A stretch of 64,000 bases of DNA from assembly GCA_950097015.1 (NCBI GenBank), contig CATNEN010000012.1:1240001-1304000 (forward strand), written 5' to 3'. Below are positions 13,605-46,079 of the stretch, one piece after another (the first letter of the stretch is position 1; every line of letters begins with the position of its first letter). The stretch is from Macrostomum hystrix. Lineage: Eukaryota; Animalia; Platyhelminthes. A model generated the notes under the pieces. That model saw nothing but the letters and a program-made list of their open reading frames with translations. It searched no databases and was not told the DNA's origin. Both the position numbers and the translations under genes were made by a program.

Positions 13605-13842
13605 AGACACCGGCGGGACACCGGCGGGAGGGCGCGGGTTGGGCGCCGGCGCCCCTCTGTACGCCCCACTATGGGCCCTCCCACCAGTGACCGGTGGGGG
13701 GGGGGCGTACGGTTTGGCCAAGCGCCTCGCTGGTGGCCCACCAGCTCCGCGCCGGTGGGGGGTGGGGGAGCAGGGTAAATTAAATTCGGGGCATATCCTC
13801 AAAGTCTACTGTTAGTAGGCTGTGCTGTATTTTTTGAGCTTT

Positions 13843-15046: not shown

Positions 15047-16132
15047 AAATGAAGTTTTAGCTGTCATGTTCAGCCTAGATTCTCGCAAATGTGCCTTATC
15101 TCTAAAAACAAACCTCATAAGTAAACAAGAAATATCACCAATTCTTTGAGGACCTCTCAACAATTAGAGTTCACAAAAAAGCTCGTTGCAGCGAGCGTGT
15201 GAATTAAAAAATGACTGTCAACACAGGTGGACAGGCGGCTTTATTCTGAAGTTCTGACGGGCTTAAAGTTCTCTGAGACGTTGTTCTCTTTGAGATTGCG
15301 ATTGAGAATGTTACAATTAATTGTAATTGCAGCAGCATTACATAGTTGTAGTTAGAACTTTCACAGTGTACAGCGCTAATTTCCTGCGGCATTGTCAGTC
15401 TTGACGCCACTTTGGCTTAACAACAGCCAGTCAAAAAGTGTTTTTGCCCTTCAAAAAGCCAGTCACACAGCAATAGTTAGAAAATCAGAAACATATTTCA
15501 GACATCGAATTTGAGAATTACGTTTATTTTGGCTCGAGCAAATAACTTTTTAAGCTGCAATGCACTGCAAACCTTCGTTTTCACTTTCACTTTCACTTCT
15601 CCGTTAAACTGATATGTAATGCACGTGTGAATTTCAAACCGATCAACAAAGTTGACACTGAAATTAATTAAACAAGACGAAATAAATACAAAGACTCATG
15701 AGATTTTTTCCTGCCATTTCTTCACGAAACATAGGAAAAGTTATTTTGCAAAGTTAATTATTGTTTCAAGCATTTATAATTGCTTGGAATTTCAGCCATC
15801 TCATAATTATTTGAGTTGGCATTTGTATTTAGAGTATATGTTATATGAATATAGCAGCAAAGTGTGTTCTTATGAAGTTTGTGTGTGTTTTTAATTATTT
15901 ATGCACTGTAGCTGCAGTTTTTACAGAAGGCACATTTTTTACTATTTTACCTTTAAGTCTCTTATAGCAGCTCAAGTTCTGTGTTTGTCTAAATAGGCAA
16001 AATTTAATCAGTTTAATCAATATTCATAAAGGCATTCAGAAGAAGATTAGTTTATTCACAGTTGGTCAATCATATCTTTTTGGTTGGCACTCAGCAGGCT
16101 GTTGTTGATTGTTGGCCATTCAGCTTCAACAC

Positions 16133-17270: not shown

Positions 17271-17920
17271 CTCTAGTGTACACTGGGATCAATTGTTATT
17301 GCTTTGCAGGAGCTAACCAACAATTTTGGGTTGGGTATCTAGCAAACACTTTACAACAAATGATTAGCCAAGCCTTACCAGTTCTCAGATGCCAGCCTGA
17401 AGATAGCAAGCAAAGCCACCATTCCAGCTTGTGTGATAAGGACCAGTTAAGATATACTAAGCCTCACTGCAGTTTGCTAAGTTTTTATCATCCTTTTAAC
17501 TGCTTTCACTTTCGTGAATCCTTAATTCCTTTAAGGCTCTTCAATTATTTTTAGCCACAATTCACTTCACTTTTAAGCTTTCAACTGAAATGCCACTGAC
17601 ATCATCCATGAGCAATGAGCTGCAGCTCAGGAGCATTGACCTAAACACTAGGTTTCTCTAGCTAGTGAAACCGAGCTATACACTATTACCATCCTTTTAA
17701 CTACCTTAAATCCATTTTAACCTTTTTAACTCCTTCTAAACACTTGAAGATTTGAAACATCCTTTGGTACACATTTTACTCCTAATCACTTCTACTTTTG
17801 CTTTACCTTTACTTTTACTTATTTACTTTTCAATATTCAGCTAGTTGTCGAATTGTTGTTGAATTGTCGAACAATGTCCCAGCAAGAGCAGGAACAGAAG
17901 CAGCAGCAACAGCAGCAACA

Positions 17921-17999
17921 GCAGCACATGGACCCACACCTCCTCGCGGTGTGCCGGGGAGCCCTCCCTCGTAAGGGGGAGAGCCTCGAAGTTGGGCCC
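17921..17999 (+). ncRNA. HDV-like self-cleaving ribozyme
   Basis: P1 CAGCAC/GUGCCG, J1/2 AUG, P2 GACCCAC/UUGGGCC, P3 ACC/GGU around L3 UCCUCGC (ACCUCCUCGCGGU as I recall it from the antigenomic HDV ribozyme), GG for P1.1, P4 closed by a GUAA tetraloop, J4/2 CGAA with the candidate catalytic C at 17987. Confidence 0.8.
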
Positions 18000-20900
18000 A
18001 AAACACTCGGAACTGCTGTTATCGTCAACGACGAAGATTGGCGCAGACTAATCCGCGCCGGCGACATCGAATCAAATCCAGGACCGCAGCTGTGCATCGG
18101 ATGCAAATTTCAACTTAGGGCTAACCCTATCCGCTGTTCAGGCTGCGGCGGAGGGGCACACCAGAAATGCACCAACCTAACGTCCAGCAACATCAAATTG
18201 TGTCAGGCCGGCAGCAAATCATGGCAGTGCGCCGGCTGCCAGTACGGCAACTCAGCAGGCACAGTCAACCAAGCTGCGCCGAGGCTGCCATGCAAAGCCT
18301 GTGGAGCCGTCATACGGCAAGGACAGCGTGGCATCCAATGCCATGACTGTGGAAATAGTTACCACGGAAAGTGCGCGATGACCAACCGCTACGAACGGAC
18401 CAAGCTAGCAAGCCAGGTTTGGGTATGTTACGGCTGCCGCGCAAACTGGCCCCCCGTGGGCGACACGCAGCCGAACGATCACAAACTGGGCACGCCGGAG
18501 AAGCCTAGAGGTCAGGACACAGAGAAGGAAGAATCGCCCCAGCAGGAGGCTGACGGCAGCATTCTCACGGTGATATCCGAGACAGGAGTCATCGATAACG
18601 GGGACACGGGCAGCAGCAAAGCAGCCCCGGATAGTCACGAGAAAAACCAGAGCAACGGAGGAAACCTCGGGAACAGATCAACAGACACGCCTCAGAACGA
18701 AGCCAGGAACCCGTGTTGTGTCTGCAAAACGCAGGTCGGAGGCAACGTGTGGAGTGTGCGCTGCAACACCTCAGGAGCATGGTGCCACCAGGGATGTAGC
18801 AATCTCAACAGCCGGCAATTTAAAGCTCGCAGCAAGGCGAGCTGGGCGAGCTGGGTCTGCCCATCACACGACACGGAGGCAAAGACAGCAGACGTCACGG
18901 AAAATGACCGACCAGAACACGATGAGGACCCGGAGCACAACTCGCCGCGAAGCGACATTAATGCGCGTTCGACGCGCCAAGCCAGGTGCGGCTACAAAGA
19001 ATGCCACAAGCCCCTCAGGGCCGGGCACGGTCTAGCCTGCCGAGAATGTAACCTCCGGGTGCACCAAATCTGCAGCGGAACATGCAGTCGGAAACTGATC
19101 GAACGATGGAAATATGAGAACAGCTGGCGGTGCAGATTCTGTAGCGCTAAACCGGAACCAGCAAAATCGGCAACAGGGCAACCTAGTAACGGCACAGCCA
19201 CCCGGAGGCACACCAACACCGTAGCCGACAGCGCCAAGCTAGAAAGCATTGCGCTCTTGCAATGGAACTGCGACGCCCTCGTGCCGAAAATACCGGAACT
19301 GGTAACGATGATGACGGAGCTTAACATCCAGGTGGCAGCCATCCAAGAAACCAAGCTGCGCTCTGAAGACCAAATACCGCAAACCCCCGGATACAAACTG
19401 ATACGGTGGGACCGCGACCGCACACGGCAGCGCGGGGGCGGAGTAGCGTTCCTTGTCCGGGAAAACATCCCCGTCAGGACCTTCATGCGCTCAGAACGCT
19501 CGGCCATCGCCGGTGAAGAACCGGCAGCTCTTGAAGCTATCGGAATCGACATCTTCCTCGAGGACGGCAGCCCGACGAGCATTTACTGCGCCTACGCACC
19601 GCCGACAGGTCGGAGAGACGCACTGGAAGCAGGGCTGCGCACCATGCCCGACAGAGAGACATGCATCTGGCTAGGGGATTTCAATGCGCACAGCGAGACA
19701 TGGGACCGGCATGCCGCCGCCAGCCCCAGGGGACAAACCGTGGAAGAGTGGGCAGAAGACACGGACTTGACCATCCTCAACACGGGAGAGAGCACCCGCG
19801 CCAGCAGGAGAGACGACACACCCAACAGCGCGCCAGACATCTCGCTGTGCAACGTGAACTTCCTTAGGCGTTTCTCGCCCACGTGGGAGGTTACAAAGAG
19901 ATTAGGCTCAGACCACTGGCCGATCATCATAAGAAGCGAGCGTAACACCGAACGCAAGCCCGACCAACATCGCCTCACTTGGAACTGGAAGACAGCGGAC
20001 TGGCCAAACTACCGCAGGCATGTGGAACGGCTCCTAGAGGCCCAACCTAACCCAAGTGAGGGAGTTCACGACCTGGAACAGAGACTGCGCCATATCGTGC
20101 TCGAGGCCGCCTACCGCAACATCGGTCTCAGTAAAGTGACCGGACCCAGAGTGGACGAGCTCAGCGAGGAAGCCCAGGCAGTTATCCAGACCAGGGATTG
20201 CGCCAAGGCGGATCCCAGCACCACCGCGGAGAAAATTGCGGAGCTGGAGGAACAGGTGCGAACTACCATACGCGCCGACCAACAAGAACGCTGGAGGGAC
20301 GCTATCCGTAGCAACAACGCCGTCGATAAGGTATGGAACCTGGTGCGGAAGGAGCAGGGGGGAGGCCGGCAGAGCGCGCCGACTGAGGTCATAACCCATA
20401 AGGGCAGGCAGTTCATCAGTCAGGCCAGCAAAGCCACCGCCTTTGCCCAGACGTACGCAGAAGTCAGCAACCTGATCATTGGCAAAGAGCACCGCCGGCA
20501 GCGCAAGGAGCTCAATCAAGCGCTGAGGAAAACGCCTAACCTGGGACCGGAAGGCCGCGAGATCACCATGGGGGAAACCATTGCTGCGCTGAACGACATG
20601 GACGGCACCAAAGCGCCTGGGCCGGACAGGATCCATCCACGACTCCTCAAAGAGCTACTACAATGTGCCATAGCAACGTTCCACAGGCTATTCCAACGAT
20701 CTTGGACGGAAACCGACGTGCCGCAAAACTGGAGGAAGGGCGAAATCATCCCGCTGCTCAAGCAGGGAGCCGATCCGGAACTGATCCCATCCTACCGCCC
20801 TATCTGCCTGACATCAGCTATCGGAAAATGGTTTGAGCGAATTCTTGCCAACCGCTTAAGTTCGTGCTTGAGAGCCGTGGCCTCATCATAGACGAGCAAG

Positions 20901-22957
20901 CCGGTTTCCGCAGCGGCCGCGCCACCACGGACCAGGCACTGCTCCTCAGCCAGGCCATTAGCGACGGCTTCCAGATCAGGCTTAAAACGCTGCTGCTTAC
21001 GCTGGACTATGCCAAAGCGTACGATACGGTGTGGAGAGCGGGCTTACTGAGTAAAATGCACAACCTAGGCATCGACGCCCGTCTCATCCGGTGGATCCAA
21101 AGCTGGTTGGCAAACCGTCGGGCCTGGGTCAGACTTGGACAAGAGACAGGCGCGCACGTCACCATGAAGCAGGGCCTGCCTCAGGGGGCCGTGTTATCGC
21201 CCATCCTCTTCCTCGTCTACATCAACGACGTTCGGAGTGCCATACCGGGAGATGTCGCCTTCAGCCTGTTCGCGGACGACCTAGCCATCTGGAGCCAAGG
21301 GAGGAGCATTTTAGAAGCCCGGCGCAAACTCCAGGCAGCGCTTGACGGAGTGGCCAAATGGAGCAGCAGATGGCTCCTCCGCCTCAACCCGGACAAATGC
21401 GAAATTGGAGTCTTTTCCATGAATCCTAATGATGCGTCGGCGGCCCCGGAGATCTACCTCAATGGGAAGCAACTCCGCGTGAACCCGCACCAGTGCTTCC
21501 TCGGAGTAACGTACGACCGCTGCCTAACCTTCGCGGAACACATCCGGAAATGCGTCCAGAAGGCCAGGCAAAGACTCCACCTACTTAGGCGCATCGGCGG
21601 CCCGGAATGGGGCATGGACGACAGCACAATCCGCGTAGCCTATCTTGCACTCATCAGGCCGGTGCTCGAGTACGCTGCCGCGGCCTGGATGCCATGGGCG
21701 GCAAAATCCCAAATTGAAAAACTGGAGCGCTGCCAGCGCGCCGCGGCGCGCATCATAACCGGTGCACTTGCCAGCACACCGGCAGAAGCCCTCCTAGCCG
21801 AAGCCGGCCTGACAACTATCGCGAGCCGGGGAAAGCTCGACGCTCTCACGCGCTACGACAAGTACAGCAGACTCGAACCGGAAACCAATCGCGCCAAAGC
21901 AGCCAGAAGCAACCTGCAGCAGCGTCTCCGGCGCCCATCGTGGCGAGACTGGTGCCGTGGCAATTGGCCGGCAAACATCCTGCAACCAACCAACACCGAA
22001 GGCAAAAACAGCATCGATCTGCCTCCACCCCCATGGTCTACCAATCAGCCGCTGGAGCTCGACCGCAACTCCATCCACAAGCTTGACAATGCCCAAGCCA
22101 ACCGGCAGGAAGCCGAGAAGAGGCTCAAAGACAAGCCAGCTGATGTCACGCTGTTCACGGACGGATCCACGACTGATGACAAAAAAGGAGGTGCGGGCTG
22201 GATCGCGTTTGACCAAGACAACAACGAAATCGGCAGCAGCTGCCAGCCAGCCGGAATCGAATGCTCCTCCACGCAAGCCGAATTGGTAGCCATAGACGAC
22301 GCACTTAAATGGCTAGCCAGAACGGAGGGCTGGAACACAGCTACCATTGCGTGTGATAGCGCGGCAGCCTTGGCAACGATCGTCAGGCGGCGAGCGCGAT
22401 GGAACGATCCGATTGCGACTAGCATTGCCCACAGCTGGAACAGCATTGGTAGAAAAATTAGCCTAGTGTGGGTCCCAGGACACTGCGGATTGCCGGGCAA
22501 CGAGGCTGCGGACGCGCTAGCCAAAGAAGGCAGCTTGATGGACCAGGCAAACTCCCCATGGCAGTGGACGCACCAGGCGGCAACCAATGCCCTGCGCAGA
22601 ACGCTGGCAGACCACAACTGGACGCACAAACGGTCCGAAGAAACTTACGGAGGGCGCAAGATCAACAGGCAGCAAATGGCCGGATGGACCAGGCGGGAGA
22701 CCGTCGAGTACACCCGTCTCCGCACAGGCCACTCGCTACAGCTACGAGCGTACGCACACAGAGTCGGCTGGGATGACAGCCCCACCTGTCGCCTCTGCGC
22801 GAGGCAGGCGGAGGACATCGAACATATACTGCTGGACTGCCCGACGTTAGATAGCATCAGGCGCACCATTGGCATCACCGCGCTTGCGGATATGAGCAGC
22901 AGACCGGCGGAGTGTCGGATCATGCTGGAGGAGTTTGTACGCCGGACAATCGCCTGA
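17928..22957 (+). CDS. LINE polyprotein: 2A, 4x PHD, APE endonuclease, RT, RNase H, CCHC finger; 1-bp frame break near 20865
   Basis: APE: QWNCDAL, IQETKL, GDFNAH, SDHWPI. RT: QAGFR, GLPQGAVLSPILF, LFADD. RNase H: FTDGS, CDS, WVPGHCGLPGNEAAD. C-terminal CRLC..EHILLDC. Confidence 0.93.
18030..18086 (+). other. 2A-like ribosome-skipping (StopGo) peptide
   Basis: EDWRRLIRAGDIESNPGP fits D(V/I)ExNPG-P. The predicted skip is between 18083 and 18084. Confidence 0.88.
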
Positions 22958-30026: not shown

Positions 30027-32899
30027 TCAGGTAGAGGGTGCGTTGACGGAACGGACGAGCGGGTGGGTCGACGGGACGGGATCGGACGGGTCTAGGACCG
30101 CTGGCTTTAGCCGGTCCACGGAAACATGGTCCTGACGCGTGCCGAGATCGAGAAGGAAAGTCTTGGTGTAGCGCTGAAGGACTCGAAAAGGTCCGGTGTA
30201 TGGTTTCTGGAACGGCGCGCGGTAGCCATCCCGGCGGATGAACACAAAGGGGCATGTAGCCAGGGCGCCCAACTCCGATGCCTGTCGGTTGCCATGTGGG
30301 ACGGTCGGCTGAGGACGGAAAGCTTGAATGGCGGCGCGCAGGTTGGTGAGGAACGTGCTGTGCAGTGCTGTAGGTGGGCCAACCTGTATGCACTCGCCAG
30401 GCAAAAGCAACGGGGCGCCATACACCAACTCGGCCGACGACGAGTGAAGGTCCTCTTTGGGTGCCGTCCGGATGCCCAACAGGACCCACGGCAACTCGTC
30501 CGTCCAGTTCGGACTGGAAAGGCGTGCCATGAGTGACGCTTTGAGCTGGCGATGGAAACGCTCGACTAAACCGTTGGACTGCGGGTGAAACGCTGTGGTG
30601 TGATGCACGTGCATGCCGAGCAGTTTGGAAACGGCGGTCCACAGTTCGGAGGTAAAATTCGGGCCCCTGTCGGTGGTGATGTCACTGGGGACTCCGAATC
30701 GAGCGATCCAGGTAGAAATGAAAACGGATGCACAGGCGCTGGCGGACGTGTCAGTGATGGGTATCGCCTCAGGCCAGCGCGTAAAACGGTGCGTGAACCC
30801 ATCGTGACCATCGTCAGCAGGTGCGTGAACCCGTGGGACTGCGGCAGGGGACCAACAAGGTCGATGTGGACGTGGGCGAAACGGCTGGTCGGTACCGGGA
30901 TAATGTCCGGCGTTGTCGTGTTATGCCGATGGACCTTGGCTTGTTGGCACGGAAGGCAACAGCGAGCCCACTGGCTCACGTCTCGGTTGAGACCTGGCCA
31001 GACGAATTTAGCTGCGATGAGGCGACGAGTGCTGCGGATGGAGGGATGGGCTAATCCGTGGACCGCATCGAAAACGGCACGACGGAAACTCACTGGCACC
31101 AACGGGCGCGGGCGCCCGGTCGACATGTCACAAAGCAATTCCAAACCAGGATGCATGGTGACGAGCTCGAGCCTGAGCCTGAGGCCGTCGGCATTACCAG
31201 CTGGTGCTGCTCCTTCGCCAATGCCGCATAGTCCACTCCTGGCAACAATGTGTGCACACTTGCTACTGTGCAACGGGATAGAGCGTCTGCAACTGAGTTG
31301 TCCTTACCGGCGACGTGTCGAATGTCCGTGCTGAACTCCGACACTGACGCTAGATGCCGCTGCTGTCGTGCGGACCAAGGATCCGATAACTTGGACATCG
31401 CGGATGTCAGCGGCTTGTGATCCGTGTAGATTGTGAAAACGCGTCCTTCGAGGAAATAACGGAAGTGCCGTGTGGCCAAATATAGCGCCAGTAACTCCCG
31501 GTCGAACGCACTGTATTTCTGTTCCGCGGGACGCAATTGTCGGCTGAAAAAGGCGAGTGGTTGCCACCCGCCAGCAATTCGCTGAACCATGCGAGGCGTC
31601 GACGGTCAGGGCCGTCTGCGCAGTGGGCCTAGGGTGTGCCAGTAAAGTGGACTGAGCTAGGGCCTGTTTGGTGGCGGTGAAAGCATCGAGTAGACTGGGC
31701 GTCCACTGCACAAGTCGGCTCTTACTGGCAATGGCGGCGTAAATGGGGCGTAGCAACTGGGCGGCATGTGGAACAAATCGGTGGTAGAAGTTCACCATAC
31801 CGGCGAATTCTTGCAAGCCTTTGATTGTGGTCGGAGGTGCAAACTTGACGACCGCATCGACCTTGTCTGGCAGAGGCCAGGCGCCGCTTTGATTGATTCT
31901 GTGGCCCAAGAAATCGATCTCGGTACGTCCGAACTGGCATTTGGCCGGATTCAACAGCAGACCGTTGTCGACTAGGCGGCGGAACAAGGTGCGCAGGTGC
32001 TCCACGTGCTGCGTTTGGTCGCTGCTGGCCACTAGGAAATCGTCCAAGTAGGCGAAAACGAAAGGCAAATCCTGGCTGATAGAGTCCACGAGTCGCTGGA
32101 ATGTCTGTGCAGCGTTCTTGAGTCCGAAAGGCATGCGGAGGAACTCAAAGAGTCCAAACGGTGTGATGATGGCCGTTTTAGGGATGTCAATTTCCGCCAC
32201 TGGTATCTGGTGGTAGCCTCGGACCAGGTCAATCTTTGAGAAAATGGTACTGCCGGCCAGGTGCGCGGAAAAATCCTGAATATTCGGTACCGGGTAACGA
32301 TCGGGTACAGTGGCGCCATTGAGCCGTCGGAAATCGCCGCAGGGACGCCAGCCTCCAGACGACTTCGGCACAATGTGGAGCGGTGATGACCAGGGGCTGT
32401 CGGACCGACGAATGATGCCGAGCTGTTCCAGGGTACGGAATTCCGCTTTAGCTATGGCCAACTTGTCGGGTGCTAGGCGGCGTGCGCGGGCATGGGTTTG
32501 GGGGCCTTGCGTCTGAATGAAATGTTCGACGCCGTGGCGTGGTTGTGCCTGTTAAAAACTCGGCTCCGTGAGCGACGGAAACTCCGCCAGCAACGTACTG
32601 TACGGGTCGCGGGCGACGGCGGCCGCCAGCCGAGGTGCTGTGCCGCAACCGAGGAGCAGATGTGTGCTGGCCAGTGAGTGGGAGTCCAGCAGGCGGCGGT
32701 TAGGTAAGTCGACCAACAGTCCGTGGTGTAACAGGAAATCAGCGCCGATGAGGGGGCGCGACACTTCGGCAAGAATGAAAGGCCAGGTGCAGGTTCGAAC
32801 GCCAAGGTCGAGAGTGATGGTGCGACTGCCAAATGTACGGATCGGGCTGCCGTTGGCGGCGAGGAGCGGTGGTCCAGGGGTGATTGTACGCGCATCGAC
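30027..32899 (-). pseudogene. pol: Gypsy pol (protease C-terminal half, RT, RNase H, integrase) with small indels; protease N-terminal half lies at ~45251-45370
   Basis: FLVDTGAEV; [32 protein letters not shown]; ELLA..TDHKPL; HIDLVGPLP; HPQSNGLVERFHRQLK. Confidence 0.93.
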
Positions 32900-34370
32900 A
32901 CTTCCCGGTCCGCAACAACCACGCCAGCTACCGAATTTTTAATATTGCCTGTGCCACATCTACAACTTAACAATTTCTGTAAAGCGACCTTAGTTAAGCG
33001 TGTGCCATTGCTTTTCGGTGACCTTGTAGGCTGGGCTTCGACGCTGGGGGTGATTAAAAAACCCGGGAATGTAAAATACGGTTGCTGGAACGGTAGATGT
33101 TATTTTGTAACGTGACAGTGAAAAGGAGATGTGTGCCAATTATAAATTCTTGAACTTGGGACCAAAATACAACAAATAGGTAAAAAAAGTGGCAGCTGTT
33201 TGGCTTTCAGGCTTTTTTGTTCAGTGTGAAAGGTAAAAATATAGATTTTTTAAACAAAAATCGGTTGCTGCAATTTACTCAGTGTGGCACAGTTGTGCCA
33301 ACTCGAAAATATTGACCTAAACGAAGGTATCCATGTGTGCCATACTTCAGAATACATTTACCCACAACATTTCACACCTTTTTGGCAATTTTGTTGTGAG
33401 CAGACAATCGGAGCATAATAGCACAAATATTTTCGTTGCATGATCAAGCTCTTGTACGATTATAGCGAGCAAGACTAATGCACATAAAATAAATAGTGCG
33501 AATAATAAAATACCTTACCATTTGGTTAGCAGCATAAAGCCTTTTTATACTGGTGTTTGTTTACTTCGATAGAAAAGAATAAATTCAAAATTCAAGACGT
33601 TGACCACCCGAGCTACTTTAAACTGCGCAAAGCAAATAAAATAATAGGAATCTCGAATATTGCCTTCCTCCTATGGGCTTATATATATTTTTGGAGGAAT
33701 CTCGAACATTGCCTTCCTCCTATGGGCTTGTATATATTTTTGTATATATACTTATATTTATATTTGTATATTTTGTATATATATATATATATATGTACTC
33801 TATAATTTAGTAAAGGTGGTGTTCTAATTTGTCGAAATATTACAGATCCTATACTAGCTATAAGCCTTGCAATGCCTTAGTTGCCTAGTTGAGGGTGAAG
33901 ATGCATTTTTACAATGTATGTAGTATTTATAATATAATGCATGCTCCACGAAGTTAATGGTCCTTCTAAATATAGCTTTTTTCTATGGCCTTCTCTAAGC
34001 TGATTTTATAATAGGCCTTTTCCTATAGAAAGGATACTATACTATAAAAAACCTCTGCTAAGTTGTTTGCTTACCCAAAAGAAAGCAAAAGTTGTTTGCT
34101 AAAGAAAAGTAGGCTAATAAATGGATGCATAATTGTGAATATACAAAGATCCATCACCATGTTAATAATGATAGGCATAAAGGTAAATCTTGAAAGTCTA
34201 GTCTATTAATGTAAAAGGATTTATTTTGTCTATAATTAACCAAGGTGTTCTTTTGTCACATTGGTTTTTGGGGGTAAACTTTGAAGAAAAGTATACTGGT
34301 AGCAATCTTACTAAATATATTTAGCAGGAATCAAAATGTTGCACTGCAAATGATATTTTGGATTTGATAC

Positions 34371-34982
34371 TTCGATCCAGCTTGTAACAACTCGATCCAA
34401 CCTCAATCCAACTTCGATCCAACTTCTAACAACTCGATCCAACCTCAATGCAACCTCGATCCAACTTTAATCCAACTTCTAACAACTCGATCCAACCTCA
34501 ATCCAACTTCTAACAACTCGATCCAACCTCAATGCAACCTCGATCCAACTTTGATCCAACTTCTAACAACTCGATCCAACCTCAATCCAACCTCGATCCA
34601 ACTTTGATCCAACTTCTAACAACTAGATCCAACCTCAATGCAACCTCGATCCAACTTTGATCCAACTTCTAACAACTCGATCCAACCTCAATCCAACCTC
34701 GATCCAACTTTGATCCAACTTCTAACAACTAGATCCAACCTCAATCCAACATTGATCCAACTTTGATCCAGCTTGTAACAACTCGATCCAACCTCAATCC
34801 AACCTCGATCCATCCTCAATCCAACTTCTAACAACTCGATCCAACCTCAATGCAACCTCGATCGAACTTTGATCCAGCTTGTAACAACTCGATCCAACCT
34901 CAATCCAACCTCAATCCAACTTTAATCCAACTTCTAACAACTCGATCCAACCTCGATACAACCTCGATCCAACTTCGATCGA
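34371..34982. repeat. Tandem 9/11-mer mosaic in the left TIR
   Basis: TCGATCCAACC, TCAATCCAACC, TTGATCCAACT and TCTAACAAC units, often grouped as ~53-bp blocks. Confidence 0.95.
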
Positions 34983-35129
34983 AGTATATTGATTATCGAA
35001 TATGATGAAGCATAGCGAAGTGTTATCATATATCCGCCAGTTCTTGTCTTCAGTTTCGTTTATTTATTGTTATTTATAGTTTCGCCTCCTTTCAATTTCA
35101 ATTTCAGGACCTTTCAGTTTTGGTCCACC

Positions 35130-38100
35130 ATGGCGGATGATTCTTTAAGTAAGTTTACAACGGCTCAGAATCTGGGGCGTGAAAGGCGTAGTTGATATAC
35201 TATACGAGTATAGTACATTCGTTTTTTATTCGTCTCTCCTTATTCTAGAACGGCAACTGACTCGTTCAAGTCTGCTTGATTTCTTCAAGCTGTGCGGTAT
35301 TGACCCTGAGGAGTATATTAGTTCTCCACTTCCTAGCCATCGTCGGTCAGATGACGATCGCTTGCCGCGTCTGTGCAGATTTTTTCACGTTCCTCCTTCT
35401 GATGTAAACAAAAAGTACGTCTATACATTTCTGCTACGTAATTACAAGGACATTTCTGAGGACGTTCCCATCGAAACAGCTGAATGTAACGCAGACTCTT
35501 CAACTGATGAGACGCGCTGCATGTAAGATAGCCTTTTTGTTTCACGTACTATTTCTGCATGCCTGTTGCGAACTGTCCGTGCCCTTTATTTAGTCAGATG
35601 TCATTGGCAGATGACATTGGCACTGACAATGTCTTCCTTTAAAACCATCTCTTTTCAGTTCTTCCTCCTCGACAATTCTGCCTATCTTCCACCAGAGCTT
35701 CAGCGAGCCCGCAGGACTTCTCCGTGACGGTGTTTTAAAGCCAGATTGGTTCAGCGACGTGGTTCGCCTTTTTGCTCTTTCGGTTGAACCGTGCTGTCTC
35801 GCGAAAAAAGTAGGAAAGTTTCGCAGAAAGACGGGGATTCATTACGCTCATGTCTACTGCTGCGAGCCTACCTGTCCAGCAACGTTTATTGTGGAAGCCA
35901 AAGATGCGAGTTTGACATCATGGGAACTCCGGACAGTCACTGCGCCATTGGAGAACCACCCTGCGGCTCGAAGTCGGCGGCTGACTGGTGAACGGCGATA
36001 TAAGCTCGCGAGATCGACGCTGGTTTCGAACTCTTACAGGGTCGCAGCGGCCATTGCCGCCAACGAACCCCTCAGTGAGGTGCCTTCGTCAGAGGCCCTA
36101 CGCATTGCAGCTGAGCGACTGCGCAGAGCTGAGCTGGGAGTTCCAGACATGGATGACCTGATAAAACTGCGCCGACTTGAGAGGGTCCTACAACCCGCGT
36201 ATATCAGAAAGGTTATCCAGAGTGAGGGTCGGGCCGAGACCATCATTCTATTCCATTCCCGTCCCTTTCAGAGTCTACGGGAGATGCAGCTGAGGGGCTG
36301 GCCCATACGTATGGGAATGGATTCAACTGCTGCTCCAATCCATCAGCGCCCCAGCAGTTGCACCAAGCCCATCTACTATCACGCTCTGGTGCTTCAGAAC
36401 CCTACCGTTGGTGGGAAAGTGATGCCATTGTTGGAGATTCTATCGACATCTCAGACAGGAATCACCCTGCGCTTTTGCCTGGACGTTTGGTTTAGAGAAT
36501 GTACGACATTTTTGTCAACAGTTCGCGTTTCGCAGGTGGTTACAGACTTCAATTTTGCCACTTTACACGGACTCATCGGCTGCTTTCATGGTCTATCGCT
36601 GTCGCTCTACATCAAAGAATGCTTTCATCACTTGACTAAGGACAGCGATTGGGATCCCCTTCCTGTCATCGGCCTTGGCCGAAGTCATCTAGTCAAGGAG
36701 ATGACTCGCTTGAAGGAAGTAACCAATTGCAGTAACAGGGCAGTCAAACAGTTCTGGCTGCGGTCTATGGCGTGCATGGTAGCGATCGACAGCATTCAAA
36801 CAGCTGACAGGCTGTTGAGAGCCATCTACCTTGTGCTCATGGCTCCTACGGAAGCCGTAGTTGAAAGAATGGATCGGCATCTAGGATGTTGTCCGAAAAA
36901 AATTTCTAAGAGTAATGAGCAACATGGAGAGCGTCCGTGCCGAGTTCGAGACTGGATCAAGAGACGAACGAATCTTCACAAATAGAAGTCAATGCAGACG
37001 GAACCATAATGCGCCGGTCCCCATTCTGGCAGCGGGCTGAACAAATCCGGCAAGAAGTTCAACTGGAAGTGAGTGCACTGCCGTTTGACGAGTCTACTGA
37101 TAGTCTGAACGCCTATGTATGTCCGGCTTTGGCTGAACGCATAACCAATACATTCACTCCGTATCTCCCTCTTATCTGCGGCATTATGCCCAGCAGTTCA
37201 CGATTTACGGAGGGGCACACGGAGCGCTGGATTGGCCTTATGAAGAACAGTGTCTTTGAGAGTAAACAAGTCAGTCTCTCTGAGTTCATCCAGGCGCTCC
37301 ATTCTCATCACAATGGGAACGAAATTCTGTTCAAGAGAGACATGTACCGTGTAACAGGTGTGACTTCTTTGGAAGAAGATGATATTGAAGAAGAGCTGCA
37401 GCCACCACAGCATTCGCCACCAGCGTCAGAGTCGCAGCGAGAGCAGCATTCGCCACCAGCGTCAGAGTCGCAGCCAGAGCAGCATTCGCCACCAGCGTCA
37501 GAGTCGCAGCCAGAGCAGCATTCGTCACCAGCGTCAGAGTCGCAGCCACAGCAAGGTGCGCCAACGGTGCCATTGTCGAATAAAACCCGGAAACGAAAGT
37601 CTGACATCTTTTGTCCAATGGTCAACTCTCAACAGGCTCGGCCTGCAGATGTCCCGCTGCAACCTGTAGTAAACAAAAAGCGTCGTCTACCGGCTTATGT
37701 ACCGTCGGCAAGTAGTGGATTGTTCATTATTTATTGCATTACGTATTTATTTTCTTGTATTTTATATTACTCTTTATTATTAATGTATTTTACATTTCAT
37801 TTATTTCATTTATTGCAACGGACATAACGTACACCATAAGTACAATGGTCTACGTAGGACAGTGCTTATTGTTTCGTCAGTTGGTGGCCATTTAACAGAC
37901 GGTGATAACTTTGTGTTCCTGTTCCATTTCTCTCTTGTAGACTTCCAGGACCTATCCTTTAGAGGGAAGACCACCTCGACAGGCATTGGAATTTGCCACG
38001 TTGAGGAACTCCGGTTTGGCTACTGGTGTGCCAGATTCTCGAGGCGGATCTATGAGCGTATACGTGTACAACGCTTGCACAGCAGACAACTTGCTCACGG

Positions 38101-39010
38101 CCTTAACCATAGCCTATCTGGATGAACCTGGATTCAAAGCAAGTCTCCAACATATTGTTGAGGATCCATTGGTAGTTTTTTCTGAACGAAGCATCGCAGT
38201 CCACCACCGAGAAGCAAGCTTTGCATGCACGAGCAAAGCTTCTTCTTCAACTCGACGCATTCAGCAGTGAACGTTTCATCAGGACAAATCAGAAAATCGA
38301 AATTGGCCTCTTCGGCAGTGAGCTTGACGTATGTATGAAGCTCCTTGGTTCAAAGCACAGACTAGTGTATCAAAGCCGGTGCCTCAACCCGCGTTGCCCA
38401 AATCCAGAGCAACTTTCCTATGGACACGCAATCACTATTGGAAGTAACTGTGCAGCTGGAGGCACAGTCGAGGATTATCTGCGAGATTTTCTTTCTTCTG
38501 AGTCCTATGGGCCGTGCTCAGTCTGCGATCACGTGCGTCGAAGTCAGGCTCCGAAGTTTCAGTTCAGCCCTCCGCCGGTTCTAGTCATCTCCTCCACAGA
38601 CTCTGATCCATTGGGCGCCAGCCGAGCTGCCCCTTCTCAAGTGGTTCGCCCCTTTTCGGACTGCAGTATTCAGTAAGAGAGAAACGTAGTATTCTTAGTT
38701 CATTTTTAAAGGCTCTACATATCGCTGTCTTGCATGCACTAATACATAAGCATTGCTAACTTTACTTCTATGCTGTAACGGCAAATTCACAATCTTCAGA
38801 TATCAACATCGTGCTACAACTTTCAAGGAAGGGGGGCACTATTTGTCCCGCATCTGGTACGCCTCAGGAACTATTAAATACGACGACTTGGCAAGAAGCA
38901 AGGGTGTCATGACCGCCGCTGTAGAGCGTGGACGCCAGCCACCTCTGGGAAACAGGGCTAACCTGTACATTTACACGATTACTAACTCGGAGGAAACATC
39001 AGGCCAGTAG
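35130..39010 (+). CDS. Spliced foldback gene 1: MULE/NOF-like DDE transposase with a C-terminal USP-like cysteine-protease domain; carries frame breaks
   Basis: CCACCATGG start. GT-AG introns 35149-35248 and 35523-35658 join three frames in phase. Candidate D (MDST, 36320), D (VTDF, 36545), xRSH and E (TERW, 37222). Later exons contain NACTADN, two CxxC-type pairs and GGHY..YDD. Confidence 0.72.
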
Positions 39011-39940
39011 CGATACAATTTGAGACCGATTCTGAATATATTAACTTCGATCCAGCTTCTAACAACTCAATGTAACGTGAAACAACTTCAATCCAACTTT
39101 GATCCAGCTTGTAACGACTCCATCCAACCTCTCTTCTTGTTTATAGGCAGCCGTTTTCTCCAAAAGTTGTTGTACAGTTAGCTACGTGTGTCAAGGCACA
39201 AGTGTACGTGCTGTATTTACTGCCAGTTTCTTTTTATTGAATCAATAGCATTTACCACCTTTTGTTAGTGAAAAGCACAGAGTAAAAGTTGATTGAAATG
39301 TACTGAAATCACAATTTGTTCAGTCTTTTTTTCATTGAGGCACCCGAACGTGCACATTCACCAAATAAATTTATTTTTCTTTTTCGTGAAGGTGACAGCT
39401 GTCTAATAAGAAGTACATTCAAAGTACAACATGTATTATTGCGTAACATTGCGTAATTAGCTACTGCGAAAAATTACTACACTAGAACCGTACGTAAAGC
39501 GAACAACTGAACCAGGTTTTCAAGCTTAGTCAAACAAAGTTCATCAGTCCTTGTAAAATAGAATTAACGTCGAAAAACTCGCAAAAAGTATATATTAAAT
39601 GAACGAAAGCAGGGACGTGCATTTTAAGTATCAGGGTATATAGGAAGGGTAAATAGATACATATTTTGTATCTGTATAGAGGCACAGACAATTGGGGACC
39701 TCAAGACTTTTGTCACACTTTTGTCTGAAGTACATAGAGCTTATCTATACATAGTTAGTGACTATAAACTACTGTAGGAAGACAAGTTTATAAACATCAT
39801 TACTTGATTTGAAACTAGACAAATAAATGTAGGATACGTTTTTGTCAGAAAAATACGACTTCAGGGTTACTAAGATGCCTGCAACGGAGACGTAAAAATG
39901 TACTAGCATACCTTTTTAAGCACATTACCATATGATTTTA

Positions 39941-42537
39941 TTACCGATTATTCTTGACCAACTGCAGACGCTGCCGCAATGCTCGTTTTGGAGCTAAGGG
40001 ATCTGTCCGACTGAGTATCTCCATATTTCGCTTTCTCGTCTTTGTAACCAGCTGCTTCTTCCTCTCTTCCTCTTCCTGCTGCTGCTTCCTCTCTTCCTCT
40101 TCCTGCTGCTGCTGCTTCTTCCTCTCTTCCTCTTCCTGCTGCTGCTTCTTCCTCTCTTCCTCTTCCTGCTGCTGCTTCTTCCTCTCTTCCTCTTCCTGCT
40201 GCTTCTTCCTCTCTTCCTCTTCCTGCTGCTTCTTCCTCTCTTCCTCTTCCTGCTGCTGCTTCTTCCTCTCTTCCTGCTGCTTCTTCCTCTCTTCCTCTTC
40301 CTGCTGCTGCTTCTTCCTCTCTTCCTCTTCCTGCTGCTTCTTCCTCTCTTCCTCTTCCTGCTGCTGCTTCTTCCTCTCTTCCTCTTCCTGCTGCTTCTTC
40401 CTCTCTTCCTCTTCCTGCTGCTGCTTCTTCCTCTCTTCCTCTTCCTGCTGCTTCTTCCTCTCTTCCTCTTCCTGCTGCTGCTTCTTCCTCTCTTCCTCTT
40501 CCTGCTGCTTCTTCCTCTCTTCCTCTTCCTGCTGCTGCTTCTTCCTCTCTTCCTCTTCCTGCTGCCGCTCGTCCGCATACAGTTGGTTTCCGTTCTGTGT
40601 TCGTCGTCGCCGCCTTTGAGGCATTCGCTGCATGCTAGACAAGCAGCGAATAAAAGCAGATAGTGTTCGGAGCGCAGTGATGTCGGCGACAGCAATCAAC
40701 TGCCGAATATCGTGCAGTACCTGTTGACGCAAACGCTGTACCGGCCGACTTGAAGGCAAGCGCCAAATTGCAGGCTGACGGCGCGAAGAGAAAGAAGCAT
40801 TTTCAGTCGGACTTAGAACTGTTGGATGAACTGCTGCTTGCAACCAAATATTCCGGGTGTCCGGAAAGTCATGAGAAAACTACAAAAGGTTAATTATAAA
40901 AACGCGCAGAACAGTGAAACTTTACTAATCAGTAATGTAATTTCCCCTGAAGTCAATCACAGCTTGGCAGTGCTCCACGAGCCGTAGAACCTCGCGTTTC
41001 AAGCAGTTTGCATCCAGACCCCTCGCCCACTGCAACGCGGCCTCGCGGACCTCATCGTGGCTGCTGAACTCCCGCTTCGAGAAGTCCGATTTCAGCCAAT
41101 TGAAGAAAAAACGGTCGCATAAATTGAAATCAGGGCTGTAGGGACTCTGAAAAAGCAGTTGAACTCCACGAGTCTCCATGTACTGCTGCACAGGCTGGGC
41201 CACATGAGGTCGTGCGTTGTCCCACTGCCACAAGACTTCGGACAGATGAATTGGCTGTGATCTGAGGCTCCGCCATAGGTCACCTGTGTGTCGAACGAAT
41301 TCAACGATGCGATTGGCATCAACAGTCTGCTTTGGCGCCGTTGACATGATAGAGAATCGCTTGCTTGGGGTGAAAGCGACTACCAGCATTGTCTTTGGGT
41401 CCCCGACTGAGTGTCTCACAACTTGAGGTCGATGGTCGCCTTGACCCAGCCAGCACCGGTTGTTCTGCCGTGTACCAGTGTTTTAAGGTACACCCACGTC
41501 TCGTCCTCCACCACGTACTTGTTGCAGAAGCTGGTCATGCCCTCGGTATGAAAAATCCGACGTATTTGCTTGGCACAATTGACGCGAGCAACCTTGTTCT
41601 CCTCGGAGAGAACATGCGGGACCCACACGGCAGACACATTGCGAAGTTGCAGGTCTTCAGTCAATATTTCATGCACTGTTGATTTCCCAACCTCCATGAA
41701 GTCAGCAAGATCTCTGACACTCACTTTTGGGTCTTCTTTCACGAGATTTCTGCAGGTCTCGATCAGCTCTGGTGTTCTCGTCGATCTCGGCCGGCCAGTA
41801 CGGGCAGCTTGGGCCAGTGGGTACGACTCGTCACGGAACCTTGTGTACCATCGGTACACTGACGACAGACCAGGCGCCACATCTCCATGCACTTTCAGCA
41901 GTTCTCCATGGCAATCAGGAGCAGATATACCAAGCTTATACCTGGTATAAGCATAAGCTTGAAACACGTCCATCTCAAAGCAGCAGCAAGGATCAATGAA
42001 GAAAAAAGTAACGATAGATGCTTGCTTTGCCTCTGCGTTGCAGTGGCCTAGACTTCTAAGTTATAACCATCAGCCTTACCCCCAAATTTGAAGCAAGAAT
42101 CTAGCTCTTTCAGCCATAGACATATATTAAGTCAAGTGTTAGAATGGTACAGTATCTTGTCAATAGCTTGTGTCTAAGTAGTTAGAATAACACATTCTCA
42201 TGACTTTCCGGACACCAGAAGTAGCTCCGTTTCTTCTATGCTCCGCCTGGCACTTTCCACCGCTGCCGTAAACACTGTGTAGGAAGGCTGCTTTAGTCGA
42301 ATCAGCGACCAGCTGTACGACAGCAACTTGATCGTGACCGCATCGACGGAAACCTTCGCGAACTCGAATCTTCAGGGCACTAAAAGCTCGAGTACACGCA
42401 CAGAGACGTTGACAAACAGTGTCAATTGCTTGGCCGTCAGACAGAGAGAAGACAACAATAGACGGCAGCGTAGGACAGGGTAAAACAGGCCCGGGATCCG
42501 GAAGGTCTGCGTCGCAGGAACTCTTCAGCAGCTTCTC
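39941..42537 (-). CDS. Foldback gene 2 (unknown protein with an E/K/Q repeat), split by mariner
   Basis: From the acceptor TTTTCAG at 42538, segments 42537-42222 and 40848-39941 total 1224 nt, giving 407 stop-free codons plus a stop. Confidence 0.6.
40054..40565. repeat. 27/30-bp microsatellite-like repeat (EEEERKKQQ(Q) on the minus strand)
   Basis: CTTCTTCCTCTCTTCCTCTTCCTGCTG(CTG) units. Confidence 0.95.
40851..42221 (-). mobile_element. Mariner (DD34D) transposon, 1371 bp
   Basis: TA TSDs at 40849-40850 and 42222-42223. TIR core GGTGTCCGGAAAGTCATGAGAA at both ends. Confidence 0.95.
40925..41973 (-). pseudogene. Mariner transposase with one frameshift near 41485
   Basis: WVPHVL, EDETW, WDNARPH, YSPDFNLCD; 34 residues separate the second and third Asp. 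Confidence 0.95.
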
Positions 42538-42637
42538 CTGAAAAAGTGTGAAAAGAAATAAACGAAACTGAAGACAAGAACTGGCGGATATATGATAACA
42601 CTTCGCTATGCTTCATCATATTCGATAATCAATATAC

Positions 42638-43779
42638 TTCGATCGAAGTTGGATCGAGGTTGCATTGAGGTTGGATCGAGTTGTTAGAAGTTGGATTGAG
42701 GATGGATCGAGGTTGGATTGAGGTTGGATCGAGTTGTTACAAGCTGGATCAAAGTTGGATCAATGTTGGATTGAGGTTGGATCTAGTTGTTAGAAGTTGG
42801 ATCAAAGTTGGATCGAGGTTGCATTGAGGTTGGATCGAGTTGTTAGAAGTTGGATTAAAGTTGGATCGAGGTTGGATTGAGGTTGGATCGAGTTGTTACA
42901 AGCTGGATCAAAGTTCGATCGAGGTTGCATTGAGGTTGGATCGAGTTGTTAGAAGTTGGATTGAGGATGGATCGAGGTTGGATTGAGGTTGGATCGAGTT
43001 GTTACAAGCTGGATCAAAGTTGGATCAATGTTGGATTGAGGTTGGATCTAGTTGTTAGAAGTTGGATCAAAGTTGGATCGAGGTTGGATTGAGGTTGGAT
43101 CGAGTTGTTAGAAGTTGGATCAAAGTTGGATCGAGGTTGCATTGAGGTTGGATCTAGTTGTTAGAAGTTGGATCAAAGTTGGATCGAGGTTGCATTGAGG
43201 TTGGATCGAGTTGTTAGAAGTTGGATTAAAGTTGGATTGAGGTTGGATTGAGGTTGGATCGAGTTGTTACAAGCTGGATCAAAGTTCGATCGAGGTTGCA
43301 TTGAGGTTGGATCGAGTTGTTAGAAGTTGGATTGAGGATGGATCGAGGTTGGATTGAGGTTGGATCGAGTTGTTACAAGCTGGATCAAAGTTGGATCAAT
43401 GTTGGATTGAGGTTGGATCTAGTTGTTAGAAGTTGGATCAAAGTTGGATCGAGGTTGGATTGAGGTTGGATCGAGTTGTTAGAAGTTGGATCAAAGTTGG
43501 ATCGAGGTTGCATTGAGGTTGGATCTAGTTGTTAGAAGTTGGATCAAAGTTGGATCGAGGTTGGATTGAGGTTGGATCGAGTTGTTAGAAGTTGGATCAA
43601 AGTTGGATCGAGGTTGCATTGAGGTTGGATCGAGTTGTTAGAAGTTGGATTGAGGTTGGATCGAGTTGTTAGAAGTTGGATTAAAGTTGGATCGAGGTTG
43701 CATTGAGGTTGGATCGAGTTGTTAGAAGTTGGATCGAAGTTGGATTGAGGTTGGATCGAGTTGTTACAAGCTGGATCGA
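42638..43779. repeat. Same tandem mosaic, inverted and about twice as long, in the right TIR
   Basis: GGTTGGATCGA and GTTGTTAGA units. Confidence 0.95.
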
Positions 43780-45372
43780 AGTATCAAATCCAAAATATCA
43801 TTTGCAGTGCAACATTTTGATTCCTGCTAAATATATTTAGTAAGATTGCTACCAGTATACTTTTCTTCAAAGTTTACCCCCAAAAACCAATGTGACAAAA
43901 GAACACCTTGGTTAATTATAGACAAAATAAATCCTTTTACATTAATAGACTAGACTTTCAAGATTTACCTTTATGCCTATCATTATTAACATGGTGATGG
44001 ATCTTTGTATATTCACAATTATGCATCCATTTATTAGCCTACTTTTCTTTAGCAAACAACTTTTGCTTTCTTTTGGGTAAGCAAACAACTTAGCAGAGGT
44101 TTTTTATAGTATAGTATCCTTTCTATAGGAAAAGGCCTATTATAAAATCAGCTTAGAGAAGGCCATAGAAAAAAGCTATATTTAGAAGGACCATTAACTT
44201 CGTGGAGCATGCATTATATTATAAATACTACATACATTGTAAAAATGCATCTTCACCCTCAACTAGGCAACTAAGGCATTGCAAGGCTTATAGCTAGTAT
44301 AGGATCTGTAATATTTCGACAAATTAGAACACCACCTTTACTAAATTATAGAGTACATATATATATATATATATACAAAATATACAAATATAAATATAAG
44401 TATATATACAAAAATATATACAAGCCCATAGGAGGAAGGCAATGTTCGAGATTCCTCCAAAAATATATATAAGCCCATAGGAGGAAGGCAATATTCGAGA
44501 TTCCTATTATTTTATTTGCTTTGCGCAGTTAAAGTAGCTCGGGTGGTCAACGTCTTGAATTTTGAATTTATTCTTTTCTATCGAAGTAAACAAACACCAG
44601 TATAAAAAGGCTTTATGCTGCTAACCAAATGGTAAGGTATTTTATTATTCGCACTATTTATTTTATGTGCATTAGTCTTGCTCGCTATAATCGTACAAGA
44701 GCTTGATCATGCAACGAAAATATTTGTGCTATTATGCTCCGATTGTCTGCTCACAACAAAATTGCCAAAAAGGTGTGAAATGTTGTGGGTAAATGTATTC
44801 TGAAGTATGGCACACATGGATACCTTCGTTTAGGTCAATATTTTCGAGTTGGCACAACTGTGCCACACTGAGTAAATTGCAGCAACCGATTTTTGTTTAA
44901 AAAATCTATATTTTTACCTTTCACACTGAACAAAAAAGCCTGAAAGCCAAACAGCTGCCACTTTTTTTACCTATTTGTTGTATTTTGGTCCCAAGTTCAA
45001 GAATTTATAATTGGCACACATCTCCTTTTCACTGTCACGTTACAAAATAACATCTACCGTTCCAGCAACCGTATTTTACATTCCCGGGTTTTTTAATCAC
45101 CCCCAGCGTCGAAGCCCAGCCTACAAGGTCACCGAAAAGCAATGGCACACGCTTAACTAAGGTCGCTTTACAGAAATTGTTAAGTTGTAGATGTGGCACA
45201 GGCAATATTAAAAATTCGGTAGCTGGCGTGGTTGTTGCGGACCGGGAAGTCGCATCGACCCCGGATGCAGGAAAAAGACTCACTTCTGCACCGGTATCCA
45301 CTAGAAAACGCCGACCTGTGTGTATGTCCGGGATAAGCAAAAGATTGTTGTTCTCGCCGGTCGTCGAGGTGT

Positions 45373-46062
45373 TTATTGACGACCGACCTGGCCGCTTCCC
45401 TGGAACTTGCAGGGTGGCTCGCAACGGCGGGCCTTGGCACCGAACTTGCGATGGAAGAAACACAAGTCGTGTTGCTCGTCAGAGGGTGGATGTCGGATGG
45501 GTCGACGTCTGTCGTCGCGGCGGTGTTGCGCAGCAGCGACTAAGGGCAGTTGTTCAGCCAGCTGGGCGGTGGCGATCACCGGCTGGGGGCGGCAGGCCCA
45601 CAGCTCGTCGGCACGTTGTGCGACCGCCCTTGGATCGGCGAAATCGGCGGACACCAGCGCCAATCGGATTTCGCTTGGAAGCTGTTGGCGGAACAACTCC
45701 TCAAACAGCAAGCAGGGCCGGTGGTCGCCGAGCAAAGCGAGCATTTCGTCCTGGGACGGTTTCCTGTCGCCCAACCCCGACATGCTCAATAACTGGCTGG
45801 CACGCTGCTGTCGTGAAAGGCTGTAGGTGTTGAGAAGGCGGGCCTTTAGCTTTTCGTATTTCTGGGCATCGGGGGCGTTCTCGAGCACATCTAGGAGACG
45901 CTCTGCTGTTTCCTGGTCCAATGCCGCCACTAGATGGCAGTACTTAGTCGTATCTAGGGTGACGTTCCGGAGGCTAAACTGCGCCTCGGCTTGGATGAAC
46001 CAGGCGCGTGGTTGTGAAGTCCAAAACGCTGGAAGCTTCGCGGTGACAGCAGATTCGGTCAT
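45373..46062 (-). CDS. gag: Gypsy gag
   Basis: KLPAFWTSQPRAWFIQAEAQF..CFFHRKFGAKARRCEPPC. It overlaps pol at G GGA AGC, a degenerate GGGAAAC-type slippery site. Confidence 0.9.
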   Translation of the reverse strand: MTESAVTAKLPAFWTSQPRAWFIQAEAQFSLRNVTLDTTKYCHLVAALDQETAERLLDVLENAPDAQKYEKLKARLLNTYSLSRQQRASQLLSMSGLGDRKPSQDEMLALLGDHRPCLLFEELFRQQLPSEIRLALVSADFADPRAVAQRADELWACRPQPVIATAQLAEQLPLVAAAQHRRDDRRRPIRHPPSDEQHDLCFFHRKFGAKARRCEPPCKFQGSGQVGRQ

Positions 46063-46079
46063 CCTCAAGCAGTCGGTTG

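Follow-up and report, generated by a model that had tools for sequence, protein, structure and literature searches.

A 64-kb stretch of the Macrostomum hystrix genome (contig CATNEN010000012.1; hereafter the window, to which all positions refer unless stated otherwise) contains a 12.35-kb foldback transposon at 32900-45250. The element probably belongs, as a flatworm representative, to the NOF-type foldback branch within the Mutator superfamily; it would move by cut and paste and is inserted in a long terminal repeat (LTR) retroelement. It carries two convergent genes, the first of which (gene 1) encodes a predicted Mutator-type DDE transposase with a ubiquitin-specific protease (USP)-like tail, and a diverged family with the same layout is present in Macrostomum lignano. 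Which protein moves foldback elements has been debated since the 1980s; in Drosophila, the link between FB and NOF is rare and has even been called non-autonomous. Two families whose proteins are 34% identical, both with foldback ends with related tips around a NOF-type gene, offer comparative support for NOF-type proteins as the cognate transposases.

The ends and the insertion site indicate a real transposon (Table 1). A first-pass annotation, made from the sequence alone, had proposed a 9-bp target duplication, inverted repeats of 2166 and 2695 bp (each a ~1.47-kb unique outer part plus an inner tandem-repeat part), and a splice acceptor just inside each repeat that leads into an inward-pointing reading frame. 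These proposals hold with minor adjustment: the duplication flanks both ends (chance probability ~4e-6), the arms measure 2,169 and 2,698 bp, and, in addition to the 1,472-bp outer part and the 53-bp arrays, each arm includes an 85-bp segment common to both. The arms are 100% complementary over 32900-33621/44529-45250 and 33618-34983/43168-44533, with similarity extending to 35068/42553, and the sole difference between the outer parts is a single A (AAA vs AA at 33620). Such perfect ends point to a young copy, or to conversion that keeps the arms alike. The unequal arm lengths arise because the copy number of the 53-bp array differs (~10 vs ~20 copies), and the arms are long, internally tandemly repetitive, and unequal, as is typical of foldback-type ends. 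Within the 64 kb, the octamer GATCCAAC is confined to the two arrays and the 29-bp tip to the two ends of the element. Mutator elements are recognized by long inverted ends and target duplications that span 8-11 bp, most often 9; the window element has 9 bp and ends of 2.2-2.7 kb, and the M. lignano element likewise has 9 bp. TTTCAG acceptor-like sites open into inward-facing frames at both sides, 40-50 bp past the inner end of the inverted repeat on the left and 15 bp past it on the right. Minus-strand LTR retroelement parts lie in both flanks, one (31304-32461) encoding reverse transcriptase (RT) and RNase H and the other (45373-46065) a gag-like DUF7041. These are two parts of a single retroelement, with the foldback element lying between its gag-like and RT/RNase H parts, which fits a genuine insertion.

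The core of the gene 1 protein is, on the evidence of predicted structure and conserved motifs, a DDE transposase of the Mutator superfamily related to MuDRA, FAR1, and IS256. With exon 3 (441 residues) as the query, an exhaustive HMMER search returned 147 relatives; the top relative was an M. lignano protein (P0001, assembly GCA_002269645.1; 34% identity, E value 8e-54), and others came from a mirid bug, a sea cucumber, and a leafhopper. In an alignment of relatives (A1), columns D221, D296, and H343 are nearly invariant and a downstream TEGxxExW..K motif is present, and the D, D, E, and C/H motifs are conserved across the relatives' alignments. In the window, the core residues are D at 36320-36322 (MGMDST), D at 36545-36547 (VTDFN), H at 36686-36688, and E at 37222-37224 (TEGHTERW..K). 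The core was modelled with AlphaFold on the relatives' alignment (predicted local distance difference test [pLDDT] score, 84; predicted template modelling [pTM] score, 0.70). When this model was compared by Foldseek with Swiss-Prot models, the first match was P16320, the 120.7-kDa NOF-FB protein of Drosophila (E value 1.7e-20; template modelling [TM] score 0.53; residues 99-564). The next matches were the MULE-derived Kluyveromyces lactis alpha3, FAR1/FRS, and ZSWIM proteins, followed by IS256-family transposases. Against the Protein Data Bank (PDB), Foldseek gave generic RNase-H-like matches with low TM scores and recovered no Mutator transposase structure, and phmmer with the core against PDB sequences returned noise only. 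A word-indexed protein search with a 408-residue piece found no match, while with profile A2 the M. lignano protein stood alone among the matches listed.

Gene 1 is spliced (its six exons are listed in Table 1), and all of its exons align to the M. lignano paralogue. The ATG at 35130 lies in the context CCACCATGG, and the model is open over 830 + 232 codons, split by one frame change at a T6 run. Judged from the sequence, this frame change may be either a genuine defect or a homopolymer error of the assembly. One RNA-type sequencing run, in which 7% of the words occurred, yielded a single 256-nt contig of depth 2 at 36485-36740 within gene 1.

The C-terminal part of the gene 1 protein is predicted to adopt a papain-like USP fold with an apparently intact Cys/His/Asp triad, and peptidase activity is predicted accordingly. 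Many relatives have a C-terminal stretch of 350-420 residues to which the window pieces 37941-38173, 38185-38673, and 38750-39007 can be aligned. In the window, this region carries a Cys box, NACTADN (Cys at 38076-38078), a CxxC...CxxC zinc ribbon, a GGHY motif (His at 38837-38839), and a YDD motif (38882-38887). A profile of the C-terminal alignment, window pieces included, matched PDB sequences of USP8 (1e-8) and USP2 (8e-6), as well as USP46, USP12, USP1, and USP21; Pfam UCH gave sub-threshold matches only. A structural model of the C-terminal domain of one complete relative (pLDDT 85, pTM 0.81) matched, among Swiss-Prot models, mouse and human DORIP1 and, third, NOF at residues 768-1054 (E value 1.6e-15, TM score 0.60, root-mean-square deviation 4.2), then USP12 and USP46; among solved structures, it matched USP46, Ubp8, USP12, and USP18 at ~1e-11. 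At the level of predicted folds, NOF and the flatworm gene 1 protein would therefore share both domains, the Mutator core and the USP-like tail. The USP-like domain is present in 26 of 160 relatives. Among 63 relatives, a PHD finger was present in 4 and Ulp1 in 2, and one relative (P0008) has a PHD finger and the USP-like tail together. In the literature searched, we found no paper describing a USP-type domain in a transposase.

A separate observation concerns vertebrate DORIP1 (C14orf28), which was the best Swiss-Prot fold match of the relative's USP-like domain (mouse Q4KL13, E value 7e-17, TM score 0.58/0.66; human Q4W4Y0) and ranked above NOF and the canonical USPs. Based on these modelled folds, DORIP1 may be a domesticated tail of a NOF-type transposase.

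The locus of the M. lignano paralogue (L001) holds a second element, 13.6 kb long, with its own 9-bp duplication, CCTAGTCAG, and ends of at least 1.9 kb that are 100% identical and contain 89-bp arrays. Its gene 1 is homologous to that of the window, with a 63-bp coding repeat at the matching place (12085-12407 of that locus, as for the following positions). Its second gene is convergent and annotated and encodes 405 residues with an 18-bp repeat in 30 copies (15197-15736), encoding (ELEKQ)n, and a basic tail; immediately behind a TTTCAG acceptor, the annotated coding sequence opens at 16289 and, as in the window, lacks an ATG. The first 50 bp of the ends are alike between the families (ACT..C..GTCCG, CCAGC, and ACCGAAtTTTTAA). 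Direct global alignment of the tips scored 11, compared with -8.9 (standard deviation 4.1) for shuffled sequences, none of 2000 shuffles scoring as high; MAFFT gave an out-of-register placement. The USP-like part of the M. lignano copy has an in-frame stop at 12925-12927, and homology to the window protein resumes beyond it (12928-13320 and 13625-13807), so the annotated 943-residue protein reads as a truncated model of a defective or mis-assembled copy. The left 89-bp array of this element also contains an 856-residue RT frame of a non-LTR element (7215-9785), with a further repeat copy at 9899-9956. Three loci of more distant relatives (L002-L004) showed no large inverted ends within the DNA examined, which is neutral with respect to the placement of the element.

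The conservation of the two-gene layout at 34% transposase identity means that the two genes are not a chance capture, the possibility that the first-pass annotation had named as its own refutation; the layout is a family feature. The different duplications and the 34% identity also argue against the two copies being segmental duplicates. The first-pass annotation had further read the element as a foldback MULE combining FB-NOF-like ends with MuDR-like convergent genes, and this reading gains support from the NOF-first fold matches and from the layout conserved in M. lignano. In both families, in-frame coding minisatellites of unrelated units occupy matching places in both genes (gene 1, 36 bp in the window and 63 bp in M. 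lignano; gene 2, 27/30 bp and 18 bp, respectively), and this type of element seems prone to tandem repeats in its coding DNA as well as in its ends.

Gene 2 of the window element was seen by the first-pass annotation as one long frame; it is split by a nested 1,371-bp element. With its TA duplication, short inverted ends, and helix-turn-helix (HTH) and DDE transposase, the nested element is a Tc1/mariner transposon; its frames (40925-41973) match HTH_48/HTH_32 and DDE_3 above the Pfam cut-offs. The separate ends and TA duplication of the mariner rule out these right-hand frames as the foldback element's own transposase. A tblastn search of phage records with a piece of the mariner returned no match. 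The mariner's own reading frame is itself split in two near 41416-41419, and this split, together with the A-run and T-run differences described above, raises the question of homopolymer errors in the assembly. Rejoined across the mariner site, gene 2 would encode ~407 residues with an E/K/Q-rich repeat and a basic tail.

Several points weigh against the placement of the element as a two-gene transposon of the NOF type. No reading-frame piece of either element gene matched Pfam, even at an E value of 10, and Pfam MULE (PF10551) had no match above the gathering score in the window pieces and weak, sub-cut-off matches in 3 of 63 relatives; the lineage is too diverged for this model. The kinship with NOF is suggested by predicted structures, not by a sequence alignment or a tree that includes NOF, Rehavkus, and Phantom. 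The family is represented here by one copy. The single RNA-type run, with its one low-depth contig of 256 nt, provided no splice junction, leader read, or transcription start. Finally, the gene 2 proteins of both families have no relatives and no confident fold, are largely low-complexity, and gave uninformative Atlas matches, and those of the window and M. lignano are not alignable, with no sequence similarity to each other.

These last points bear on the alternative that gene 2 is non-functional, its long frame being a by-product of an in-frame repeat in the spacer of a one-gene transposon. The lack of an ATG and of a Pfam match, the low-confidence structure, the absence of RNA evidence in that run, and the fact that all three frames are open across the repeat are in keeping with it. 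However, the frame is also open for 104 codons upstream and for 90 + 36 unique codons around the repeat, and it stays in phase across the mariner site. The family at 34% identity has an annotated gene, beginning exactly at a TTTCAG acceptor, that agrees with gene 2 in size, position, strand, and type of repeat and likewise has a basic tail; in each family, the length of the repeat unit (27/30 bp and 18 bp, respectively) is divisible by three. We therefore regard a non-functional gene 2 as unlikely and retain the two-gene reading.

A second alternative is that the element belongs to Rehavkus (Repbase; Tribolium and annelids) rather than to the NOF lineage. Rehavkus has been described with long inverted ends, subterminal minisatellites, and a 9-bp duplication, as in the window element (PMC6446971; bioRxiv 10.1101/2024.12.02.626372), and the PHD finger that defines it occurs among more distant relatives of the window protein, once alongside a USP-like tail. 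Against this, the best structural match named for both domains of the gene 1 protein is NOF, and Rehavkus is set apart by description, with one open reading frame reported as opposed to two genes here. Pfam detected no PHD finger in either the window pieces or the M. lignano paralogue, and a pattern scan that covered this paralogue and the other database relatives (the window pieces being outside that scan) gave none either. Assignment to Rehavkus thus appears improbable, more so than a non-functional gene 2; NOF-type elements and Rehavkus may, however, form one clade, which would turn the matter into a question of naming. That the unit is a composite of two inverted non-autonomous foldback elements that trapped host DNA, or a false inverted duplication made by the assembler, is highly implausible: although FB pairs mobilise intervening DNA (PMC6431247) and assembly errors can yield perfectly identical 2-kb inverted repeats, one 9-bp duplication surrounds the whole unit, its flanks are two parts of one retroelement, its asymmetric interior encodes the cognate type of transposase, and an independent locus in another assembly has the same layout with a duplication of its own.

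Table 1. Features of the foldback element and its insertion site (window positions)
Feature	Position	Strand	Remarks
Target site duplication, left	32891-32899	none	CGCATCGAC; sequence match
Target site duplication, right	45251-45259	none	CGCATCGAC; sequence match
Left inverted arm	32900-35068	+	2,169 bp
Left unique outer part	32900-34371	+	1,472 bp; tip reading ACTTCCCGGTCCG...; self-complementarity
Left 53-bp tandem array	34372-34983	+	~9-11 copies; 24 GATCCAAC motifs
Left inner 85-bp unique segment	34984-35068	+	common to right arm
Two TTTCAG acceptor-like sites, left	35102-35117	+	exon start 35108 or 35118; 12-22 nt 5' of gene 1 ATG
Gene 1, predicted NOF-type transposase and USP-like tail	35130-39010	+	six exons, ~1,066 codons
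Gene 1 exons	35130-35148, 35249-35522, 35659-36911, 36986-37698, 37941-38672, 38800-39010	+	
Gene 1 introns	35149-35248, 35523-35658, 36912-36985, 37699-37940, 38673-38799	+	GT..AG, frame-keeping
Predicted DDE catalytic core	36320-37224	+	motif conservation, RNase-H-like fold
Coding tandem repeat, 36 bp x 4	37408-37553	+	in frame; between transposase core and USP-like domain
Predicted USP-like (C19) domain	37941-39007	+	profile alignment A3, motifs
T6 run, gene 1 frame change	38176-38181	+	frame 3 to frame 1; comparison with paralogue, which is open straight through there
Gene 2, distal part	39941-40848	-	302 codons and stop; in frame with proximal part across mariner site
Gene 2 tandem repeat, 27/30 bp	40051-40569	-	in frame; encodes (EEEERKKQQ)n
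Nested mariner	40851-42221	-	1,371 bp; TA duplications 40849-50 and 42222-23; 27-29-nt inverted ends
Gene 2, proximal part	42224-42537	-	104 codons; begins right after TTTCAG acceptor (42543-42538), no ATG
Right inverted arm	42553-45250	-	2,698 bp
Right inner 85-bp segment	42553-42637	-	shared with left arm
Right 53-bp tandem array	42638-43782	-	~19-22 copies; 45 GATCCAAC motifs
Right unique outer part	43783-45250	-	

Taking the element as a NOF-type foldback transposon, its mode of action can be proposed as follows. The gene 1 protein would comprise an N-terminal zinc-containing beta-sheet DNA-binding region, the DDE core, and, at its C terminus, the USP-like cysteine peptidase. Studies of Galileo and Muta1 (cited in PMC4079207 and bioRxiv 10.1101/2024.12.02.626372) suggest, by analogy, that the transposase may bind the conserved tip and the reiterated GATCCAAC arrays. 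Both genes would be transcribed from the shared inner part of the ends, with the 85-bp segment as a presumed common upstream or outron region, and both pre-mRNAs would be trans-spliced to the spliced leader at TTTCAG. In M. lignano, the spliced leader terminates in ATG and trans-splicing acceptors have the motif [T/C]TNCAG (PMC8629364), which the left TTTCAG sites match. The start codon of gene 2 could then be the terminal ATG of the leader, which would be in frame with GAG AAG at 42537. For gene 1, two outcomes can be envisaged: (i) the acceptor with exon start at 35118 would place the leader ATG in frame, four codons 5' of the gene's own ATG or (ii) the acceptor with exon start at 35108 would instead yield a short upstream frame. 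The gene 2 product may act as a helper, analogous but not homologous to maize mudrB. More speculatively, the USP-like domain might strip the transposition machinery or chromatin of ubiquitin-like modifiers, in line with proposals for the VTD and OTU domains of Helitrons (PMC9741609).

Despite this complement of parts, the present copy probably lacks autonomy at this stage and is likely inactive on its own, given the mariner insertion that splits gene 2 and the altered frame of gene 1. The description of the element as near-complete and autonomous-type in the first-pass annotation, which had noted neither of these breaks nor the splicing of the left gene, was therefore generous.

A broader generalization can be offered tentatively, and we consider it doubtful as a whole: that NOF-type foldback transposons are an old animal-wide lineage whose transposase is always combined with a catalytically competent USP-type deubiquitinase, and that the flatworm element needs a fast-evolving partner gene, with both genes driven from the ends and the spliced leader providing the partner with its start codon. 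If this were true, the recurrent pairing of foldback ends with a NOF-type gene would settle NOF-type proteins as true foldback transposases, and vertebrate DORIP1 would have arisen by domestication of a copy of this USP-like transposase domain. Irrespective of this generalization, the predicted USP domain adds a class to the ubiquitin/SUMO proteases borne by transposons (Ulp1, OTU, and VTD) and provides a testable idea on how such elements handle host ubiquitin pathways. As a conserved gene lacking an ATG, gene 2 offers a test case for the donation of start codons by a spliced leader. Furthermore, in the transgenic model M. lignano, a young cut-and-paste element that is endogenous and has known ends could be turned into a tool.

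Two further features of the window lie apart from the element. A 23-bp tandem repeat array occupies 10.5 kb at 1746-12275 (~460 copies, 85-92% alike); its strands are extremely asymmetric in composition (AT skew ~-0.7), and it contains long spurious frames. At 17853-22957, a non-LTR retrotransposon carries a PHD finger ahead of an apurinic/apyrimidinic (AP)-type endonuclease in its first large frame, followed by RT, RNase H, and zf-RVT.

Foldback elements of the FB-NOF, MULE-NOF, and Rehavkus-like kinds have already been described, and the window family is a new flatworm member of these, as judged by published descriptions rather than by sequence comparison with Repbase or Dfam; no paper on such an element in Macrostomum was found in the literature searched. 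Its predicted protease recalls other transposon proteases (Ulp1/C48 in plant KI-MULEs, and OTU and VTD in Helitrons), in which a cysteine peptidase of the ubiquitin/SUMO system is likewise fused or carried (PMC9741609), but the flatworm domain is of the USP (C19) type. Phantom and Tm1, both animal MULEs, share composite ends bearing tandem repeats, 9-bp duplications, and one or two open reading frames (PMC3169594; PMC6446971). Phantom differs in its FLYWCH finger and a MULE domain recognisable by Pfam, neither of which Pfam finds in the window protein, and the latter has the USP-like tail. Maize MuDR resembles the window element as a member of the Mutator superfamily with a 9-bp duplication and two convergent genes next to its inverted ends (mudrA and mudrB; PMC6446971). 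In the window element, the convergent layout is combined with a shared upstream segment, and both are conserved in M. lignano. The MuDR ends, however, are ~0.2 kb long and without arrays, MURA has no USP-like domain, and no similarity was detected between gene 2 and MURB, so that the resemblance is one of layout only.

The closest known system, as indicated by the predicted structures, is FB-NOF of Drosophila melanogaster (DNA/MULE-NOF in RepeatMasker). Identity to NOF is only 15-18% in structural alignment, and the flatworm elements differ in having a second, convergent gene, introns, and ends with a 1.47-kb unique outer part, whereas FB ends consist of repeats almost throughout. Work by Templeton and Potter in 1989 and by Harden and Ashburner in 1990 is said to have described NOF as a single long frame that, within FB, has 308-bp inverted repeats of its own. 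The role of NOF as the FB transposase has been disputed (Badal et al. 2013, as cited in PMC4079207). What the two systems have in common are kilobase-long inverted ends with internal tandem repeats, a 9-bp duplication, and one large protein (1,056 residues in NOF vs ~1,066) that, at the fold level, appears to join a Mutator core (NOF 99-564) to a USP-like tail (NOF 768-1054).

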